Source of the DNA: Cyanophora paradoxa CCMP329
Lineage: Eukaryota > Plantae > Glaucophyta
Length of the DNA: 64,000 bases
Assembly: GCA_004431415.1 (NCBI GenBank)
Contig: QPMI01000411.1
Span: 186,001-250,000 of the forward strand
Reading direction: 5' to 3'
Shown: piece by piece, positions 17,171 through 42,400 of the stretch
Layout: the number at the start of each line of letters is the position of its first letter
How positions within the stretch are numbered: position 1 is the first letter of the stretch
The notes under the pieces: generated by a model
The model's input: only the letters and a program-made list of their open reading frames with translations
Told to the model about the DNA's origin: nothing
Database searches by the model: none
Position numbers and translations under genes: made by a program

Positions 17171-19564
17171 ATGAGCTTCGCCGCAGGCACTCCAGCTCAT
17201 CCCGTCGCCGGTGTTCGGTGCCCAGCTTGGCAGGGATTCGGCTCTCAGAATACGAGCCCGACCGCCCGCCCGAACCGTCCAGTTTCCCGCGTCGGCGGTT
17301 TCGGCGGGTTGGGCGTGCTGGCGAGGCCTTTCTTCGCGGGATCCGAGTCCAAAAGGCGGTTGTTTAGCTCCAGCAGCTGGCATTCGCGCCTTCGCGGTCG
17401 GTTTGCCGCCGAGCGCGCCTTCACGGTAGGCTTGCCACATGCACCGGCCGTTCAGGCCGTTCTGGTGCGTGCCCCTGCGCGTACGCCAGTCCCGAGGCTT
17501 AGCTTTAGCCGCGCTGAATGTCTGTCGAGCGTTGCCCCGTCGCGCGCCGCTCCTGGCTGAGATCGCGCCATGCTTGCAGAGCCCCGCGCTCGTCGAGATC
17601 TTCATGTGCCTGGGGACGAACGTCCTGCTCTCCTGGCTCTTCCATAAGATATCGACGACACGGCCGCAGCAGGTCGGCACGGCGAGCGGTTCGTCGCTTC
17701 GACATCCCGCGCTCTTTCGCGCCCGCGTTTCGTACGAAGCACGTGCGCTGAGAGGGGCGCTTCGCAGGGCTCTTCGCGAGCCCTCTTCAGACGCTGATCA
17801 TCGGCGGCTGCTTCCTCAAGGCGGTCTCGGGGATCCACCCCATCAACCTGGAGCGCATGCTCTCCCGCCGCCTCTTCCAGCTCAAGGACCGGTGCGCTGC
17901 GCCTCGCTGCCGCCTGCCCGCCCGCCGGCGCGGCGCGCTCGAGCCGGCCCCGGGGCGCAGGCACGTGGCGCAGGCGATCCTCTTCGGCTACCTTCTCGTC
18001 CAGCTCGCCTCCCTGCGGGATGTCATCCGCCGCGCCCCCGCCCGGCCCCTCATCCACATCGGTCCGCCCGCGCCGCGCTCCGCCCCGCCCCCCGCCCCGC
18101 GCCCCCGCGCCCCGCGCCGCGCCCCCGCGCCCCGGCGCCTCACGCGACGCGGCGGGGCAGACGGGGAGACGCCGTCGCCGTCGGCGGAGGACGACATGCT
18201 GAGCCCGGCGCCCGAGACGCCCACGCCCTCCCCGCCCCCGACGCCCCTCGACGACGAGTCCCCGCTGCCCGCGGCGCCCGCGCCGGCGGTCTCGCCGGCC
18301 GCCCTCGCGGAGCAGTTCCCGCGCGTGGCGAAGCACCCGGCGGGGGCGCTGATCATGGCGGCGCGCTCCTGGCGGGAGGTCTGGTGGACCGTCCTCGCCG
18401 CCTGCGTCGTGGCCCCCGTCTTCGAGGAGTGGTGCGCGGGGCGGGCCCGCCGGGCCCAGCGGGCTGGGCTCTGACGCGGGCGCGCTCAGGGTGTACCGGG
18501 GGATCGTGTTCCGGCGCCTCGTCGTCCTCTCCTCGCCCGTCTTCGCGGGCCTCGCCACGGCCCTCATCTTCGGCGTCTCCCACTGCGTGCGCCTCCCAGG
18601 CGGGGCCCAGCCCCCATAAACCAGATGGCTGCCTCGAGCTCGGGCCGAGCCCTCCGCCCGGGGGCGCTTCGATTCGCGCTCGCCGACGCCGGCGCCGGCG
18701 CAGCTCTTCCCGTTCTTCGCGGCGCGGGACGTGACGCGTCGGGCGCCTGGGATCCGCAAGGAGATGGCGCGGCAGAAGCAGTCCGCCCGCATCCGCCTCA
18801 ACGTCCTCCGCTGCGGTGCGAGGCGCCCCGCGCGCCCAACGCCCCCCTCCCTTTCCCCCGCCCCCCAGCACCCACCGGCGCTGGGAGCAGCGGCCGGGGG
18901 GGACTGGAGCTCGGCGACGGACACGGTGGTGGACGCGTGGACGGAGACGGCGGGGCGGCCGGGGAGCTCCTGGCCCTTCCAGGCCCTCTCCAAGGCCGAG
19001 GTCAAGCAGCTCCAGGCCCGCCCCCGCCCCCGCCCCCGCCCCCGCCCCGCTTCCCCGGGGGCCGCCTGACGCCGCCTGGCGCTGGCGGGCAGGTGTGCGA
19101 GTACCCGGAGGACGTGGAGGACCTCGCCGAGTGCGAGGCCGTCATCGGCCGCCGTGCGCCCCCGCCCCGCCCGCCCCGGTCCCGCCCGCCCCGCGCCCCC
19201 CCGACCCGCCCCGCCCCCGCAGTGCTCTTCCGGTGGTACGAGGAGGGCGGGGGCAAGCCGAGCGAGGCGCCCCTGCACGCCATCCTCGGCACCCGCCGCG
19301 CCGAGCGCGTCATCCGCGCCTCCGCGTCCGCCCCGCCCGCCCCGCCCGCCCCGCCCCGCCCGCCCCGCCGGCGCCTGGCGAGCCGGTCGGCAGCGGGAGG
19401 TGGAGGAGTGGGAGGGGGCGCTGGAGGAGCTGGAGGGCCAGATCGAGGCGCAGCGGCGGGCGGCCGCCCTCCCCACCCTCGCCTCCGACTCCCTCGCCCT
19501 CGCCCCCATGGGCGCCGCCCTCTCCGCCGCCTACGTCGCCGGTCCGCCAGCCCCCGCCCGCTGA
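17171..19564 (+). CDS. CPBP (Abi/CAAX protease type II)-like membrane protein, predicted plastid-targeted, multi-exon
   Basis: MSFAAG... transit-peptide-like start. Spliced VAPVFEEWVYRG (EExxxR) and LIFGVSH (FxxxH) motifs. Helical C-terminal extension ending at TGA 19562-19564. Confidence 0.75.
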
Positions 19565-20453
19565 GCCCAGCTTGGCCGAGCTGAGCTGGGGGGGGGACAG
19601 CCGGGGGGCGGCTGCGGGCCTCCATCGCGTGCCACTCGCTCCTCAACGCCCTCGCCTGCCTCGCCGCCCTCGTCCTCTCCGGTCCGCCCCGCGCCCCCCC
19701 CCCCCCCCCCTGTCGAGCCGCCCACGCCCCCCCCCCCCCCCCTCCCCTCGGCGAGCGCAGGCAAGCTCGTCTTCGCAGGCCACACCCGCCGGAGATGACC
19801 CCGCCCCCTCTTCTCCCTCCCTCGAGCCCCCCCCCGCTCTCTCCTCTCGCTTGCTCCCCTGGTCGCTCTTGAGTCGCGTGCTGGCGTGCTTTTGTTTTTG
19901 TTCTTAGATCTTGCTCACTTGTTTGAAACATGTCGTCATTGAAGCGTTGCTGGCCAATTGTAGACGCAGCCCTGCGGCCCAGAGCCCCGTGACCCGTGGG
20001 GCATGCGCCTGCAAGTCGCTCTGAAATAGAACCACCGTCACCGAGTTAGACGCTGCGTGCTCTTCAGCTGCCAATGATCGCAATTCAATGATTGCAAAAC
20101 CTGATTAGGAATTCGATACCTATTCTTCGACTAACCTGGTAGCGGTGAACTCGACTTGGCATGCGCAAGGCCGTAAGGTTCTCGATCTAGATCTAGATCT
20201 GTAGCGAAAAATCGATATGCAACTGTACTGCACGGCTCAACGATAACGTGGCTGTCGGCATGCGAGCATTGATTCGGTGATGCTAAAAGCAGAAGGCAGT
20301 TGCATAAGAAATTCTTAAGCTTTATCTTCGACGATCTTCTTCGATGTCGACTGCTGAAGCTCCTAACAAATATGATCGAAACAGCCAAGAATGATTTTCA
20401 GATTTACCGATTGCGGGCATCCTGACTACAAGCTTTCTAGATCCGGATCCGAT

Positions 20454-32400: not shown

Positions 32401-35400
32401 TCGCCGTGTCCACCGCCGATTTCACCGTTTCCGCCGCGCTCACAATCCCGTCGCCGACGTCCTGCCGCGCGCAAGGTCACACCCGGCTGCAGGCACTTCT
32501 TCGCTTTAAATTTCATATGTTCATGGGAGAAGAAATAGAACCTCGAAAAAATCCCCAACCTGCAGGAAATTAAAGCAGCGCGCGGCGTCAATTAATTATA
32601 AGATTGGGTGAAGAGTTTCTTTAATGAATCTTGAGGCGTACGTCGCTGAAAAAGTCGCCAACTGCACCGAAGAACAGGAGAGAACGGCCCAAAGCTGTCG
32701 AAGAATTGCGTTGAATGTCAGTCTTGCATAGCTAGCCGCAGAGCCGCACGCGAACCTTTCCTCGCTGGCGCCGGGTCCTTTGAGCTTGGGCGTTCAGCCA
32801 GCCGCGCTTTGATTGAGCCCGGTGCCTGCGAGGCCCACCCCACCTTCGGATGTCCGAGGCTGCTGGCGCGGACTGGCCCGGCCCGGGTTTTGTTTTCCGC
32901 GGCCTTGCTCGAACCCTCAGGATCCGGAGAGCGACGGAACGTACTGTGATCGAAATCGATAATGTTTAATTGAGTGGTCGCGCAAAAGAAATATACAGAG
33001 CAACACGTGCACACGTGTGGGGAATCGTCGTGTCTCTGAGGCGAGAAAAGTATGAGGCGTCTGATTGAAGTCCGAAAATTAAACAAATTGCAATTGGAGG
33101 CGCACATATCGTAGTAGTAGAGATCCAATTCACCTGCGAGACGCGGACTTAAGCACAGAGAGCACGGCAGTTCCGACAAACTACTATATATATGTGATAT
33201 GAAAGTAATTCGACGAACTGAACACGTCCTGCGCATGCGAAAATCAATCGCGCGAAACTCGCGACGAGAGATTGAAGCTGAATTTTATATATAATTATAT
33301 GATCATAAACGAAATAAAAAGAGGGCGCACCGCGAGGCTTGCCTGCTCCGTCTGCAGGTCCACGCAAGTCCCCAGCACTTCGCCACCGGAAGAGACGGAA
33401 ACCCGGCACGGGCGGCGCTCGGCGGACAGGACGCGCAGCATGAGGCCTCCAACCACGTGCCGTCCCGGGCTCCCTTCCCCGACGGGCCTTGGTGCGGAGC
33501 AGCCCCTGGCGCGATGATCGTGAATAAAACGCGAATAAAAATTGCAACAACACTCTTCGGTTTCATAACGAATTTTTCTGAATCTCAAGTGAATGCCTCG
33601 ATCAATTATGCCTATTAATTATGCCTCGATCAAGTACTAGTAAAAGAAAAGTGCTGGGGCCTCACCAGTGAGGCCCTCCGACGACGACGCTGAGAATAAC
33701 ATCAGGGCCTCGTCAAGTAATTTCTACAGAAAAGGAGCGCACTCTCCCGACTCGAACCGGACCTCCTTCTGGAGGAGGACGTCGCCGGAGAGGGCCACTG
33801 TGATCGAAGCGGGCGCCCGCTCGCAGTGCAGCGCCGCCACTTGCCCGAGCTCGTCGAGGTTGGTCACGTGCGCGTGCTGCACCGCCGAGTACCGAAGGTG
33901 GAGGCTGCGCTGCGAGTCCCAGGAGCCGAGCCTTACAGAGGCAGACTCCATGCATACCGCGTTGAGGGGGACCCCCGCTCTCACTTCCTAGCCGAAGCCT
34001 CCCTCTCCCAATACCTCGACTGGCGCCAGCTTCGCAACGCGGGGGCCGTCCTCAGCAATCCTCACGTTACCCTCGCCCCAGCCCTCTCCCTCGTGTCCGA
34101 CAAGCCACCGGACCGCCGTACCCCCACAGGCGATCACCTCCGCAAAGTCAGATTCCAGTGCATTCTTGGAGGCCTCCCCTCCCTCACCATCCGCCTCCTC
34201 CACGACCCCGACCTATACGGCCCTCTCTTTCCTGACGGTATCGCCCACTGCCCCTTCTGTCACCTCCCCCCACCCCTGCCCCAGTCCCCGAGGACCCTAC
34301 TTCCCCACCCCACCCTCCCCGCCCCTGCCACGTGCACCCCCCGGGCTCCCCCCGCCCTCTTCCCACCGAGGGCCGCAGACCCCAGACAGCCCGACCCTAC
34401 AACCCACCCCCCGAAGACTTCATTCACATATTTACGTGCCCGCCGCTCGCCTCCTCCTCCAAGCTTTCCAGGATGCACTCGTGACCTTCCTCCGCACCCG
34501 GGTTCTCCGCCACTCGCCCAAACCCTTAGGACACGACGACACTATTTTTCAACTCTTTCCTTCCTCCGCCTCGTCTCCCCTGACCCCGCCTCTCCCTCCA
34601 ATCCGCCCTCCTCTCCCCACCGAAAATCCGGCCCTTTTCCGCCCCCAGGTCTTACCGATACCCTATGGACAAAGCTTAGCCCGGCCTTGGCTGACATACT
34701 CCCCTTCCCCGCCCCTGCCCTCCTGCGCCTCGGTACCCCGGCAGGATTGCCCGCCCTCTGCGCAGCCCTGGGCATCAACAAGACCACCACAATGTCAATC
34801 CAAAAAGATTTAGCGCTACTCCTCGACCAACACCTCCGTGCGATCTGGAGGGACCGCTGCGCCCGCAACCACGCCTGGGAGCTCCGACAAGGCATCACTG
34901 ACAGAACCAAACGTCGATACCGCAAACATGCCGACACCAAACCCTCCCGCTCGCCGCTAGTACAGCCGCCTAGTCCCCCCCTCCCCCCCGCCCCCCCGCC
35001 CCCTCCCTCCATGATACCATCTCCATCACTGACTTCTGCTGCGAATTGGACTCGGAAGGCCAACCCTGGGTTCTCCTGGAAAATATCCGCCAAGCAATAG
35101 CACGACTCCCTGCCGCCCCTCACCCCAGGCCGCCCCTCCCCTCAGGCCCCTCCCTCCCCCCAACCGCCCGATGCAGGACCCACCGCCGGGACATCTGACT
35201 TCTCTTGCACCTGTGGCACCCAATTTGCCTCCGCAGCTGCCCTCCAGGCCCACTCCGACGCCAGACGGGGAAAGTGCCCCGCTCGCCCAGAGACCACCTC
35301 ATACTCTCGACCTGCCTCCCAACCTGCTGCACCCCAACGCAGCCTTCCACAAGAACCCCGACAATGGCACCCTGCCCGCTCTGCCCGCGGGCCCTACGTC

Positions 35401-37135
35401 CGCTACTCAACCTTCCAAGCGCCCCGCCCCAACGCTCCCCCTGGCCCTCCCTCGAAACGAACTCGCCCGTCGCCTGCCTCACGCAAACGGACAACCGCTA
35501 CTCCCCCGCCCCGGCACCCAAACGCCCGCGCCTCATGACCCCTCCCCTTCCCGCCTCTGCACCCGCCCACCCGTACCTACGGCAAAAAGAAAGGCAGCCG
35601 GTCGCAAGACCCCCAAGCGCGGGACCAAAAAAGCGCGAACGGTGTCGATACCTGCTGGACAACCCACAATCACGTCCCTCTTCGCACCTGGAGTGTACAA
35701 ACCACTAACGACGCTTCAAGTAGCCGACTCTCCCCCCCCCCCTCGCTTCAGCCGGCCCCCCGACCGGGACCCCGCACGGTGCCGCCCCGCTGCCCCTACG
35801 GTTCCTCCCCAGCCCCAACCGACTCACAAGTGCCGAACCCCTCGTTGACTCCGGCCACCCCTATGGCTTCGGCCCTCCCCTCGGCTTCGGCCCCCCCTCG
35901 GCTTCGGCCACCCCATCGGCTTCGGCCCCCCCCGGCTTCGGCCACCCCATCGGCCTCGGCCACCCCTCTGGCTTCGGCCACCCCCCTACTCAGACCGACC
36001 CTCCCGACCCCTCGCGACCCGCCTCGCCTCCGCACTCCCCGCTCTCTGCGCCGCCTGTCAGTGCCCACGCTCACTCCACTCTGCCGTCCCGGCACCGCTC
36101 CCTGCCCTGCCCCGCATCCGCTGCCCACCCCCTACCGCTGCCTCCGCCCACTCCCTCTCCTTCCTCATATCTTCCTCCTACCACCTTCTTCACCTCGACA
36201 GAACGGGACACCGATTAATCGGGGTCCTGGGGCGCAGGTGAGGAGGAGGGAGGAGGCAGAGTGAGGAGGAGGAGGGGTGGCGGAGCGGCGACAAGGGAGG
36301 GCGGCGGACTGCGAGACATTTCACTTCCAGGGCTCATGAGGGATGGAGGAGTTGATCAAGGGGTGGGCGCGCGGGTCTGGTTACGGCTATCACCGAAAAC
36401 CATGGCTCCCCCACTCAGGCGAACCTCCCATACTGAGCGACCCATGGCCGGCACCTCGCTAGCATCTTCGGCTAGATAGATGACCGGTCGGAAGGGCGCG
36501 TCACGTAGAACATTGATACATGTGCCGTGGTGTATCAATGCGACGTCCACTTTTGCAAAAAAAAAAGAGGCTGCGCTGCGAGTCAGACGAATTGCAATTG
36601 CAAGAGCTTCGATTTGTAACACCACACGCATGCCTAATGAATAAGATCGAAGCTCATATGGATCTAGATTTAGAGCGGAAGGCGCGCACCTTTTCTTCCC
36701 GTCGCGCTCGCGAATCTCTTCGTGCTTGAAGTTTACTCGCCCGTGCGCGTCCTTCCACCTGTGAGCGTCCCAGCCGGGCGCGTGCTCCCCTCTGCCGTAG
36801 CGATGCGCCGCGCTGGGTCGGCTTCTGAACTTGACCGCCTCTGCTCCAAAGGCGCCGGCTGCTGATGTCGCTCTGGAGCTCGAGCTGCCGGCGCTGCTGC
36901 CGGTCGCGGCGCCGGCCGCTGTCGCGGTCGCGGCTCCGGCTCCCCCGCGGCCGGGCCCGGCCGCGGCCGTGGTGGTGGCGCCAGCCAAGAGCACGCATGC
37001 GAATAGCGCGCACGAGGCGGCACACAGAGCGAACGTGTACGTGTACGTATACGTACACGATCGCGACTTGGTGCGGGTCTGCGTCCGAGGGCGCGCGCTC
37101 TCGCGCGCCGCCGCCCCTCCCCAATATCGATGCAT
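20454..37135 (-). CDS. Very large multi-exon single-pass surface protein: signal-like N-terminus, unknown beta-rich and Cys-rich domains, pectin-lyase-fold/PMP-like GGAI...FxxN repeats and C-terminal TM; interrupted by a LINE
   Basis: Continuous chain of short minus-strand exons from FALCAASCALFACVLLAG (~37000) through GGAVAIS...FEHCNFVGNRALVGGAV and NNAAKVTGGAIAV (21700-23600) to the TM IAAIAIGAAAGVAVLVAAFFVAWRR and TAG 20454-20456. That this is a single gene, and the exact start, are inferred. Confidence 0.65.
33901..33918 (+). repeat. Left target-site duplication of the LINE (18 bp)
   Basis: GAGGCTGCGCTGCGAGTC, identical to 36567-36584. Confidence 0.95.
35850..35987 (+). repeat. ~18-nt minisatellite inside the LINE
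   Basis: About 7-8 copies of GGCTTCGGCCACCCC(A/C)TC, translating as (ASATPS)n. Confidence 0.85.
36113..36313 (+). repeat. Long imperfect inverted repeat in the LINE 3' region
   Basis: ~100-nt arms centred on GGAC-A-CCGATTAATCGG-G-GTCC. The strand C/G skew flips exactly at 36216/36217. Confidence 0.8.
36511..36540 (+). other. Terminal stem-loop immediately before the LINE poly(A)
   Basis: CATTGATACA-N10-TGTATCAATG, a perfect 10-bp stem. Confidence 0.85.
36567..36584 (+). repeat. Right target-site duplication of the LINE (18 bp)
   Basis: Directly follows the poly(A); identical to 33901-33918. Confidence 0.95.
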
Positions 37136-38145: not shown

Positions 38146-38900
38146 ATGGCGGGTGCTGCCTGGCGCGCCCTGCAGTTCGCCTCGGTGTGCTACGTAGTGC
38201 ACGATCGGGTTGCGATCGTCGCCGAGGTCCGCGCTGCATCGCCGCCCGAGCGCGCCGCTATGACACGCTCGAGCCGCCGGCGACAGGTGCACGGGCCGAG
38301 CATGCAGCCGACGCTGCAGACGGAGGACTGGCTCTTCGTGGACCGCTTCTCGCACCGATGGCCGCGCGAGCGCCCGCACGCCGTCGGCGACGTCGTGTTC
38401 TTCGCGAGCCCCATCGCGGCCAACCGGCTCGTCGTGAAGCGCATCGCCGCCCTCGTGCGCGGCCCGCGGCCGCCTCCAGCGGCGCCTTCCCATGCTTTAG
38501 CCGCAGCCCGGCGATTGGGTCGACCCGAGGAACGGCAACAGCCCCTTCCAGGCCCGCCACGCCGCCCGCCGCCGCCGCCGCCGCGGGAGCTGAGGCGCTG
38601 CGCAGGTCCCCCGGGGCCACGTGTGGATGCTGGGAGACAACCCCGGCATGTCGACGGACTCGCGGGCGTACGGCCCCGTCCCCATGGGCCTCATCCGCGG
38701 CCGCGCCCTCTGCCTGGTCTCCGCCCCCGCCCCGCGCTTCCCTGCGCCCGCGCCGACCGCGCACCGCCGCGCCGCAGCTCAAGCCCGGCGATAGGAGAGG
38801 GCCCATCCCGGGACCGCCCCCGGCGCTCTCCGAAGCGCCACCTCCCCTGGATCCGCCGCCGCCCGCCGCCGCGGCCGCCGCCGCCGGCCCGGCGGCGTGA
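38146..38900 (+). CDS. IMP1: Mitochondrial inner membrane peptidase subunit 1-like (S26 family), 5 exons
   Basis: [10 protein letters not shown] (catalytic Ser), [14 protein letters not shown] (catalytic Lys), [12 protein letters not shown]...[18 protein letters not shown]. Confidence 0.9.
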
Positions 38901-39445: not shown

Positions 39446-42400
39446 CTAGGCGAAGCCGAAGCCCTGGGTCTCGCGGATGGCGGTGGCGAGGCAGCGCCGC
39501 AGCTGCTCGCCCGACGCGTAGTGCGGCAGCAGCAGCCGGTGGAAGCACGTCTGCCCCGCGCGCATGCCTCAGCGCGGCTGGGCGCAGGGCAGGTCGGGGG
39601 TGGGAGAAGAGGAAGACCTGGGCGCGGGGGAGGCGGTTGGCGGCGGGGGGTCCCGCCTCCTCGTCGAGGCGGACCGTGAAGCGCGGCTCCAGCGCCCTGC
39701 CGGCCCCGCCCCCGCCGGTGAGCGCTGCGGCGCGGCGCCCGCCCGCAACTCCCCGAGGCGATTGGGACGAAAGCGCGAGTCGGGGGAGCGGACCCGAAGC
39801 CGCCGAGGGGCAGGCGGGAGGAGCCGGTGGCGAACTGGAGCAGGAGGGCGAGGTCCTCCTTGCTCATCGCCCCCACCGCCCGCCAGAACCACTCCACCAC
39901 CCGGTGCCGCGCCGGGCACCTGCGCGCACCGGCGCTCGGAGGGGCGCGGCGGGTGCGGCGGGGGTGGAGGGGGGCGCGGGGGGGCGCGCCCGTCGATGAC
40001 GGTGTTCTTGCGCATGTCCGCCACGTCGATCTTAGGGACCTGCGGGGGCAGGAGCTCGGGCCGGGGCGGGGCGGGGCCGGGGCGGGGCGGGGCGGGCGGA
40101 CGCCGCAGAGGAGCAGCTCGAGCTCGTTGGGGGTCAGCAGCCGCAGCGCGCTCTCCTCCACCATCTGCGAGCGAAGCCCGGGGAGCCTTCGAAGGGGCCG
40201 CGGGCGGGGGCGGGGGGACCTCGAAGAGGCCCCTGCGGACGTAGCGGACGAGGGGCGCGACCCGCCCCTCCACCAGCCACGACGCCAGCAGCGCGCAGTA
40301 CTCTGCGGAGGCCCCCCGCCCCTCGCCCCCGAGGCCCGGCGACGAGCGGGGGCCGGGGCGGAGGCGCGCCCCGCCCCGCGCGCACCGTGCTTGGAGCGGT
40401 CGGTGACGCGGATGCGGCGGCCGCCCTTCTTCAGCTCGACCACATCCAGCAGCTTGCCCCCTGCGCGGCCCGGGCTCCGGGCCGGCCCGAGACGAAGCCG
40501 GGCGGGGCGGGGGCGCACCGGGCCCGTGGAGCTCCTCGGCGAAGGCGAGCTCCTCCAGCCCCGACTCCGCCAGCGCGTGCTCCAGCACGTACCTGCCCGC
40601 GCAGCCAGCCGGCTCGCCGCCCCCCGGCCCCCGAGAGCGGGCGTCGGGCGCACCGGATGCGCCGCTCGTAGGTCTCGGGGTCGTCGCTCTGCCGGGGCGC
40701 GGGCCGGGCGGGAGGGCGGGCGGGGAGGTCAGCGGCGGGGGCGCGCCCCCGCCCGCGGGGCGCCGGGCACCTCGAGGTCGGCGAGGGAGACCGGCACGCC
40801 CAGCAGCATCTGCCAGCGGCCTCAGCGGCGCCCGGTTCGAGGAGGAAGGGAAGGGCGAGGAGAGGCGGCCGCGCCTTGTAGAAGGAGCGGGAGAAGTAGA
40901 GGGCGAGGGGCCGGGGCGCCGCCCCCGCCAGCGTCTCCCGCAGCGCCCGCCCGAGGAAGCGCCCCACGAACGTGTACGTCTCCTCCGCCCCGTGGCTCCC
41001 GGGCAGGATCGAGACCGGGTTCGGGTGCAGCAGCCGCGACCTGCAGCCGGCGGGGGACGGCGAGGGGGGGGGTGAGCGAGCCCCGGGGGGTGCGGGGTCT
41101 CCGGGGGCACGGGTACCGCTCGAAGGGCACGAAGAGGCGGTGGGGCTCGGCGTAAAGCGCCCGCGCGACGGTGTCGAACCAGTCCGCTGTCACGCCTGCG
41201 CGGGCGCGTCAGCGGGGCGGGGCGGGGCGGGGCGCGCAAGGGCAGAGCGGGCACCGCCGGCGTCGACGCCCTCCTCGCCCTCGAAGCGGATGCGGAGCTT
41301 CCTCTTGAAGCGCGCCGCGGAGTGCAGCCTGTGGCCGGCCGGGGCCCGGGGAGGGATCAGGGGAGGGGAAGCGAGCGGCCGGGGGCGCGGGGCGCGCTTC
41401 GATATGGAGTCCTCGAGGACGTGCGTCCTCCGCACCCGCACCCCTACCTGCGCGCGCGAGGGGAGCGGCGTCGGCCGTGGCGGCGGGGGATGGGGTTGGG
41501 GGGACGGGCGGGCCTCCCCGGGGTAGAGGCCGCGGGAGGAGATCGAGGGCACGGGGGGCCCGAAGAGGACGGAGAAGAGCGAGTCGTCCCGCCTGCCCCG
41601 CGCCCCTGCGAGGCGACGAGGAGCACGCTCAACACGGCACGAGAGGGGCGCGGGGAGCCTGAGGGCGGACCGCGGCGCCCGACGGCGTCCTCCTCGTCGC
41701 TCCCGTCCAGCTGCAGCCCGAAGGGACCCTGCCCCGCCCGCCCGCCCCGCGTTCACTTCACCGCCCCACGCCCGCCCGCCCGCCCGCTCGCCTCCTCTCC
41801 CGCCGGCGCACGCGCACCGAGCTGCTCTTGCGCGGGGAGCCCTCCGCGACAATGGCCGCCCTCAGAAGCCGCCGCTTGCCCTCCAGGCTGCGCGCGCCCC
41901 CGGCCGACGTGAGGGGCCTGGCGGACGGGAAGGAGGTGGGGGTGGCGAGGGCGCGCCTCCCCGCGCGCTCGCTGGCGCCGGTCGCGGCGACGAGGCGCCT
42001 GAGCAGGGCGGCCGCCGCGTGGCCCTGCGCGGGCGGGGTTCGCGGGCGGGGAAGGCGGGGAGGAGGGGCCCGGGGGCACGCGGCGCGACGCGCCTCGCCG
42101 GGGTCGGAGCAGCGGAAGGGGACCGGGGGCCACTCCGGGCACCGGACCTCGAAGAGGCCCGGCTCGCCCCCCGGGGCCGCCTCGACGCGCAGGCCGGGCA
42201 GCAGCGGCCACTCGAAGAGGACGCGCGCGCCCAGCAGGAGGAAGGGCGTCGAGAGGGCCACGCCCCGCCGCGAGACCCGCAGCTCCGCCTCCTGCCCGGG
42301 CAAGGGGCGTGAGAAGGGCGGCGCGGGGCAGCGGCGGGCGAGCCCGAAGAAGAAGAAGAAGGGCGGCGCGGGGCCAGGCGGGCCCCTCTAGCGCCGGCGC

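Follow-up and report, generated by a model that had tools for sequence, protein, structure and literature searches.

Here we show that a 64,000-nucleotide stretch of the genome of the glaucophyte Cyanophora paradoxa CCMP329 (contig QPMI01000411.1, positions 186,001–250,000 of the forward strand; hereafter the window) carries a young non-long terminal repeat (non-LTR) retroposon in plus orientation, lying between two perfect copies of an 18-bp target-site duplication (TSD) at the edge of a coding exon of the minus-strand gene model tig00020556_g11031. Before the insertion, that exon needed a 3' splice site (acceptor) upstream of it, and this acceptor is likely to have been part of the duplicated target, in which case the locus now holds two copies of it. 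The data also suggest, though at odds only somewhat better than even, that a 5'-truncated element of the long interspersed nuclear element (LINE) type landed here by chance, that the proximal, original acceptor was kept, and that the host message is now truncated or decayed. As the evidence stands, there is nothing unusual about this recent insertion: a Cyanophora element of LINE type, so far undescribed, most likely disrupted an orphan gene or gave it a new start.

Hallmarks of a recent retroposition

The 18-mer GAGGCTGCGCTGCGAGTC forms a perfect direct repeat at 33901–33918 and 36567–36584 and occurs just these two times in the window, where 0.09 matches would be expected by chance with two mismatches tolerated. 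An uninterrupted poly(A) tail of ten residues (A10, 36557–36566, plus strand) abuts the second copy, and when all A runs of at least seven residues on both strands of the window were scanned for flanking repeats, the stretch 33919–36566 was the sole insertion recovered. This insert is 2,648 bp long between the TSD copies, with a base composition of 45% C. A repeat search of 33500–37000 found no terminal direct or inverted repeats in it other than the TSD (neither long terminal repeats nor terminal inverted repeats), a blastn search of the window with the insert returned only itself, and an exact scan of JGI metagenome contigs with its 26-nt 3' tail gave no match. The 18-bp TSD falls within the variable range of ~7–20 bp that is typical of non-LTR insertions. 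In addition, the 3' region of the insert (36440–36566, 127 nt) is predicted to fold with −42.4 kcal/mol (z = −2.8), a stability reached by 1 of 200 shuffled sequences, and an 11-bp stem-loop at 36511–36540 (plus strand) stands 16 nt ahead of the poly(A) tail.

The first-pass annotation had read the TSD on the minus strand as GACTCGCAGCGCAG|CCTC, and both this reading and the positions given for the two copies are borne out by the exact repeat. In the copy adjoining the intact exon (33901–33918, identical at 18 of 18 positions), the duplicated acceptor AG is at 33906–33905 of the minus strand and the exon runs from 33904; in the copy adjoining the old intron (36567–36584), the same strand carries the original AG at 36572–36571 and the GAC of a CTGAC branch motif, with its A at 36583. 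The minus-strand nick site, ...CAGCCTC/CACC, is GC-rich and not of the TTTT/AA kind, in agreement with the earlier remark that the target has no TT/AAAA-type site of mammalian L1.

Together, these hallmarks identify a non-LTR retroposition in plus orientation, which is young given that its TSD is perfect, and the insert is almost certainly a product of target-primed reverse transcription (TPRT). An assembly artefact or a tandem duplication was considered and rejected in view of the poly(A) tail and the unique 2.6-kb insert.

Judged by its coding remnants, the insert is probably a 5'-truncated LINE or LINE derivative. Many LINEs have a zinc-binding module located after the reverse transcriptase (RT), and the first 115 codons of the insert (33919–34263, plus strand), at its truncated 5' end, show by eye the layout of the zf-RVT zinc module (KVRF..L..LPS...L, then CPFC), together with a coding-like GC content of 0.71/0.50/0.72 at the three codon positions. 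A feature search of the ESM Atlas with this piece, which is a language-model search, assigned 26 of 30 named hits to PF13966 zf-RVT clusters with a top score of 0.92, a lead-grade result that comes without an alignment; the AF2 model of the piece (pLDDT 43) was unusable. The other half that such a zinc knuckle would require, EDFIHIFTCP (PPPEDFIHIFTCP, 34404–34442, plus strand), was recognised by eye in a three-frame translation, in frame 3 and ~50 codons past CPFC, and an ESM Atlas search with this piece alone gave no usable match. An intron in the insert as the cause of this change of frame was rejected, there being no GT...AG on the plus strand at that place. The split knuckle suggests that the source copy was defective or frameshifted, and since the TSD is perfect and the copy young, the defect probably predates the insertion and was already present in the source RNA.

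No Pfam family that would bear out a LINE was found in the open reading frames (ORFs) of the insert, whether whole (E ≤ 1) or in pieces (E ≤ 10), and the copy holds neither RT nor endonuclease, an absence that is expected if it was truncated behind the RT and that is therefore no argument for or against a LINE family. Rfam gave no match on the whole window, and when the 393-aa insert frame was put to a word-index search, the outcome was swamped by proline-rich words, with 8,000 proline-rich candidates and none of them significant. The label of LINE, as first given to the insert, thus retains moderate support: the zf-RVT likeness in the language-model search speaks for it, whereas the lack of an RT domain and the blank Pfam result do not. 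The family to which the insert belongs is undescribed, with no part of it recognised by Pfam, and the element may be a LINE-derived non-autonomous retroposon. With its TSD, tail and stem-loop, so clean and young an insertion is useful for defining the element family.

Further features lie behind the zf-RVT-like piece. A GC-rich tandem repeat at 35852–35986 (plus strand), a variable-number tandem repeat (VNTR) detected by TRF and by the repeat search, has a period of 17–18 (also 35 and 52) and about 7.6 copies. One C2H2-like finger, FSCTCGTQFASAAALQAH (35200–35253, plus strand), follows after the long insert frame has stopped; it resembles the Pfam family C2H2_ASCIZ_4th with E = 2.7e-4 and 21 bits, under the 24-bit cut-off. 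A PIP-box-like QPTITSLF (Q-x-x-I-x-x-L-F; 35660–35683, plus strand), noticed by eye and blank in Pfam, directly follows the lysine/arginine-rich KRKAAGRKTPKRGTKKAR inside an ATG-started 225-aa ORF of the insert (35171–35848). Near the 3' end, the G-rich segment 36245–36280 is 72–75% complementary to two C-rich segments 1.2–2 kb upstream (34975–35010 and 34173–34201; blastn self-hit 72.6%), which probably reflects low complexity and not a designed long-range helix.

The host exon and its probable acceptor

The 59-codon minus-strand frame that borders the insert (33903–33727) was searched by full HMMER against 1.84 billion representatives and found a single real match, P0001 (78 aa, 96% identity over residues 17–71), plus one spurious repeat protein. 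P0001 is the EukProt entry EP00741_Cyanophora_paradoxa_P011420, tig00020556_g11031.t1, which confirms the species. Residues 17–71 correspond to the host coding exon, LHLRYSAVQH...RFESG (33743–33904, minus strand); the 177-nt frame 33727–33903 has a GC content of 0.76/0.41/0.86 at the three codon positions, and without splicing of the next intron the exon would stay open as far as TAG 33724. Laid on the sequence, the model begins at ATG 33951–33949, within the antisense 5' end of the insert, and its first 16 residues (33905–33951, minus strand) consist of 11 codons of antisense insert followed by five (DSQRS) from the duplicated "intron end". It then runs to 33743, splices a 53-nt intron (33742–33690; GTGCGC...CTGAT at −16...CTCAG) and ends with TGA 33664–33662 in a last exon (33689–33662) whose C-terminus, DVVVGGPHW, was matched to the sequence; intron and last exon together occupy 33662–33742 of the minus strand, and the same intron was among the candidates of a crude screen. 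Pfam is blank and, with no further relative of the host exon in the HMMER search, g11031 is by this measure an orphan gene.

The empty site was rebuilt by removing the insert and one repeat copy, and was then translated. There, a stop codon interrupts the exon frame 28 codons upstream, and neither the exon nor the frame ahead of it offers an ATG, so that the host exon was no first coding exon and an acceptor was needed. Base composition points to where this acceptor would have been: the 66 nt preceding the TSD are 41% GC with low GC at third codon positions (GC3), and the codons of the TSD are already GC3-rich, like the exon (GC3 0.86). The interval contains four AGs, and this composition switch coincides with just the two that lie in the TSD (CGCAG|CGCAG|); acceptors outside the TSD were rejected because the intervening codons up to the TSD have low GC3. 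Within 60 nt upstream, the sole yTrAy motif is CTGAC, at −16 relative to the second AG and with its branch A at −13; this spacing equals that of CTGAT in the annotated 53-nt intron of g11031, and the first AG is only 6–7 nt from the branch A. A donor GTGCGC at 36689 is phase-compatible with the second AG and would delimit an original intron of 119 nt (36571–36689, minus strand; 48% GC) that ends in CGCAG. This donor hexamer is common to the 36689 site and to the annotated g11031 intron, while GTGCG[CT] is found at 36 GC-to-AT transitions on both strands of the window and was the commonest donor-like hexamer in the crude intron screen, suggesting that Cyanophora introns may have an unusually GC-rich donor consensus, G|GTGCGC.

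The exon that would precede this intron is a putative coding exon at 36690–36850 (minus strand), which ends in ...FKHEEIRERDGKK plus two bases and could reach back to ATG 37135. Its last 53 codons, in the frame chosen by the first-pass annotation, have a coding-like GC content of 0.66/0.51/0.76 at the three codon positions. The phase arithmetic proposed with that frame holds, the two bases (AG) left before GTGCGC at 36689/36688 and the C at 33904 making up the full codon that precedes LHLRYSAVQH. No protein of 81–542 aa containing the exon was found in a database of 5.8 billion proteins (word-index searches among candidates 170–542 and 81–259 aa long), and it is thus not in the published annotation.

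We consider it likely, on these grounds, that the TSD contains a host acceptor, and infer that the second AG and the donor at 36689 are the sites that operate. The earlier claim that the TSD copies a host 3' splice site can therefore be kept for a probable acceptor, indicated by the composition switch, the CTGAC motif and the need for an acceptor, but its status as a working site is read from sequence.

Alternatively, there may be no real host gene, the "exon" being a chance ORF with GC3 periodicity or a dead gene fragment and the "splice site" just an 18-mer that happens to include CAG. This would agree with an exon whose only relative is its own model, with an unannotated upstream exon, with the blank Pfam result and with the commonness of CAG in GC-rich DNA, but it has to contend with a codon-position bias sustained over 59 codons, with the sharp change to 41% GC exactly at the TSD, and with donor and branch motifs that match the annotated neighbouring intron in form and spacing, and we regard it as unlikely.

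If the TSD does hold the acceptor, the question arises whether the element sought it out. The element family might target 3' splice sites of the CGCAG type, either by way of its endonuclease or because access is linked to the spliceosome or to R-loops, and a nick site that is GC-rich instead of TTTT/AA would be in keeping with such a preference. Site-specific LINEs of the R2/Tx1 kind recur at one defined target sequence. The idea draws here on a single copy of the element, however, and has to be set against what chance would deliver. C. paradoxa has 25,831 genes with 9.2 introns each in a genome of about 100 Mb (PMC6704402), which amounts to 25,831 × 9.2 = ~238,000 acceptors, and there are 16 positions per acceptor at which an 18-bp duplication takes in the AG together with one or more exon bases. 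Were insertions random, an acceptor would thus lie within ~3.8% of the 18-bp TSDs in this species. LINEs make up 2.47% of the genome, or about 2.5 Mb (PMC6704402), and this amount of LINE sequence implies about a thousand or more fragments and hence tens of acceptor-spanning cases before selection. At a rate of 3.8% per insertion, one such case does not call for targeting, which appears very improbable; the coincidence with an acceptor is best explained as a chance product of extreme intron density.

Predicted splicing across the insertion

The sequence of events that we favour begins with the insertion of a 5'-truncated LINE-type non-LTR copy into tig00020556 by TPRT. The first nick would have been made in the minus strand, 4 nt into the exon (...CAGCCTC/CACC), and the second in the plus strand, 18 nt away; fill-in of the 18-nt stagger would have duplicated the last 14 nt of the 119-nt intron, including the branch A and the AG, along with 4 exon nt of g11031. 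If the proximal acceptor is still used, the message would enter the antisense insert and stop after 22 codons, and the orphan gene, which is probably dispensable, would yield a transcript that is truncated or decays.

Use of the proximal acceptor appears most likely because it retains the CTGAC branch motif and a 119-nt intron, while its copy has no such motif and would need an intron of 2,785 nt, compared with a mean intron of 86 bp in C. paradoxa (PMC6704402). At the duplicate, GGGAC replaces CTGAC, as the first-pass annotation had noted and the sequence confirms, and no yTrAy motif occurs within 60 nt. From the original acceptor (AG 36572–36571), translation of the minus strand over 36420–36569 gives 22 codons of antisense insert and then TGA at 36503–36501; a stop near 36501 had been predicted correctly, but after ~21 codons. 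No GTGCG[CT] donor able to make a second intron of the remaining insert was found on the minus strand of the insert.

A more benign outcome had been proposed at first, namely that the duplicate acceptor allows the element to be removed without a scar. The old donor at 36689 would then be joined to the duplicated acceptor at 33905, the old intron and the insert would leave as one 2,785-nt intron with a wild-type message as the product, and the insertion would be harmless or would act as an on/off splice switch. Such a route has some attractions: 14 intron nt and 4 exon nt are identical around both acceptors, the branch A at −13 is kept and the phase is correct, TSD-derived splice sites are documented for introners, non-LTR-derived families included (PMC9860276, PMC12130899), and decay of the early-stop isoform might enrich the productive one. 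It would nevertheless have to bypass a proximal acceptor that is intact and comes first, make do with a copy stripped of its branch motif, and define an intron ~32 times the genome mean, and the published annotation, although trained on RNA sequencing (RNA-seq), has no junction from the upstream exon to the host exon. In human NF1, moreover, Alu insertions into 3' splice sites (AG or polypyrimidine tract) lead to skipping of the downstream exon and not to clean removal (PMC3219598). For these reasons the proposal of scarless removal is not upheld here, and we consider the route unlikely.

The published model itself embodies another possibility, in which the insert made a new, shorter product of 78 aa that starts in the antisense insert (ATG 33951) and takes its first 16 residues from insert and TSD. 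This product is identical to the BRAKER1/Augustus model g11031.t1, and its ATG is in frame, where the empty site has no ATG in that frame; on the other hand, an exon with so strong a coding signal obliges Augustus to place a start somewhere, and the ATG may be a prediction artefact. Gene models of C. paradoxa are RNA-seq trained and guided, and their source paper cautions that they need curation (PMC6704402). A genuine chimeric start therefore seems rather improbable. With no in-frame ATG in the rebuilt empty site, the N-terminus of g11031.t1 would be either a novelty made by the insertion or an artefact of prediction, and the locus exposes a mis-modelled gene, its start lying inside a transposon.

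Our explanation as a whole, a chance 5'-truncated LINE-type insertion with the proximal acceptor kept and the message truncated or decayed, is one that we hold with a little more belief than doubt, and several observations weigh against it. The insert gives no LINE domain in Pfam, and the two halves of its zinc knuckle lie in different frames, so that a non-autonomous retroposon is possible instead of a truncated LINE. The gene could be spurious, given a host exon that has no relative beyond its own model and an upstream exon that is both unannotated and without relatives. A second intron model also fits, in which a donor CAG|GTGGAA near 36762, sharing its frame with ATG 36998, is joined to the first AG, although it likewise places the acceptor inside the TSD. 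Finally, the chance estimate is built on averages over the genome, with neither selection nor a possible preference of the endonuclease taken into account.

Should the distal acceptor be used after all, the locus would be a natural case of intron expansion by a retroposon at no cost to the gene, and a case in glaucophytes to place alongside the introner mechanism, with its TSD-supplied splice site. By extension, C. paradoxa retroposons with TSDs of 14–18 bp that copy a 3' splice site could be removed with the old intron via the duplicated acceptor, such that insertions are neutral and 86-bp introns grow to kilobases; we think such a general process unlikely. The locus allows the choice between the proximal and the distal acceptor to be tested with existing RNA-seq.

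The window around the insertion is GC-rich (50–79% per 2 kb), and a 2-kb block at 18001–20000 has 78% GC, a GC skew of −0.15 and an AT skew of −0.17. Two further ORFs were picked out by eye, one inner-membrane/signal-peptidase-like (38146–38500, plus strand) and one long ORF (about 39500–40650, minus strand) with a HECT-like C-terminal motif, LLLQFATGSSRLPLGGF; both lie in DNA of 75–79% GC, in which all six frames are open for hundreds of codons.

Comparison with known systems

Insertions of L1 type made by TPRT are characterised by 5' truncation and by TSDs of 7–20 bp. The insert resembles 5'-truncated LINE insertions in its poly(A) tail, perfect 18-bp TSD, 5' truncation, lack of terminal repeats and 3' stem-loop. 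It differs from them in the nick, which is CCTC/CACC and not TTTT/AA, in a copy that has neither RT nor endonuclease, and in the long C-rich region and 17–18-bp VNTR that follow the zf-RVT-like piece.

Transposon insertions that are spliced from the pre-mRNA as introns are familiar from maize and Drosophila alleles (Ds/dSpm in wx, adh1 and bz), in which donor and acceptor lie inside the element and scars are usual. The idea of an inserted element being tolerated as splicing removes most or all of it is shared with the distal-acceptor route considered above, whereas here the proposed donor belongs to the host itself and the proposed acceptor is a duplicate of a host site. The Alu insertions of NF1 are similar in that a retroelement with a TSD sits in the acceptor AG or polypyrimidine tract of an intron; unlike the present case, in which the target is not T-rich, they occurred at a T-rich L1 endonuclease site, and the downstream exon is skipped (PMC3219598).

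Recruitment of splice sites from the TSD is an established mechanism in introners (PMC9860276), and non-LTR-derived introner families exist, accounting for about 5% of classified families (PMC12130899); glaucophytes are not mentioned in either of these two papers. As in introners, a TSD supplies a splice site here and the whole insert would in principle be removable without a scar, and an origin from non-LTR elements has its precedents among them. Introners, however, make a new intron within an exon and are present in multiple copies in many genes, while here one 2.65-kb copy adjoins the end of an intron that was there before, both signals would be host-derived, an intact acceptor competes upstream, and any splicing of the insert is putative. 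No formerly continuous exon has acquired a new intron: an intron with its end in the TSD is already required at the empty site, as shown by the stop 28 codons upstream, the missing ATG and the 41% GC stretch, and the insert could therefore at most lengthen an existing one. From this standpoint, the locus is best filed as an undescribed LINE-type retroposon in an ordinary, though neatly placed, insertion.

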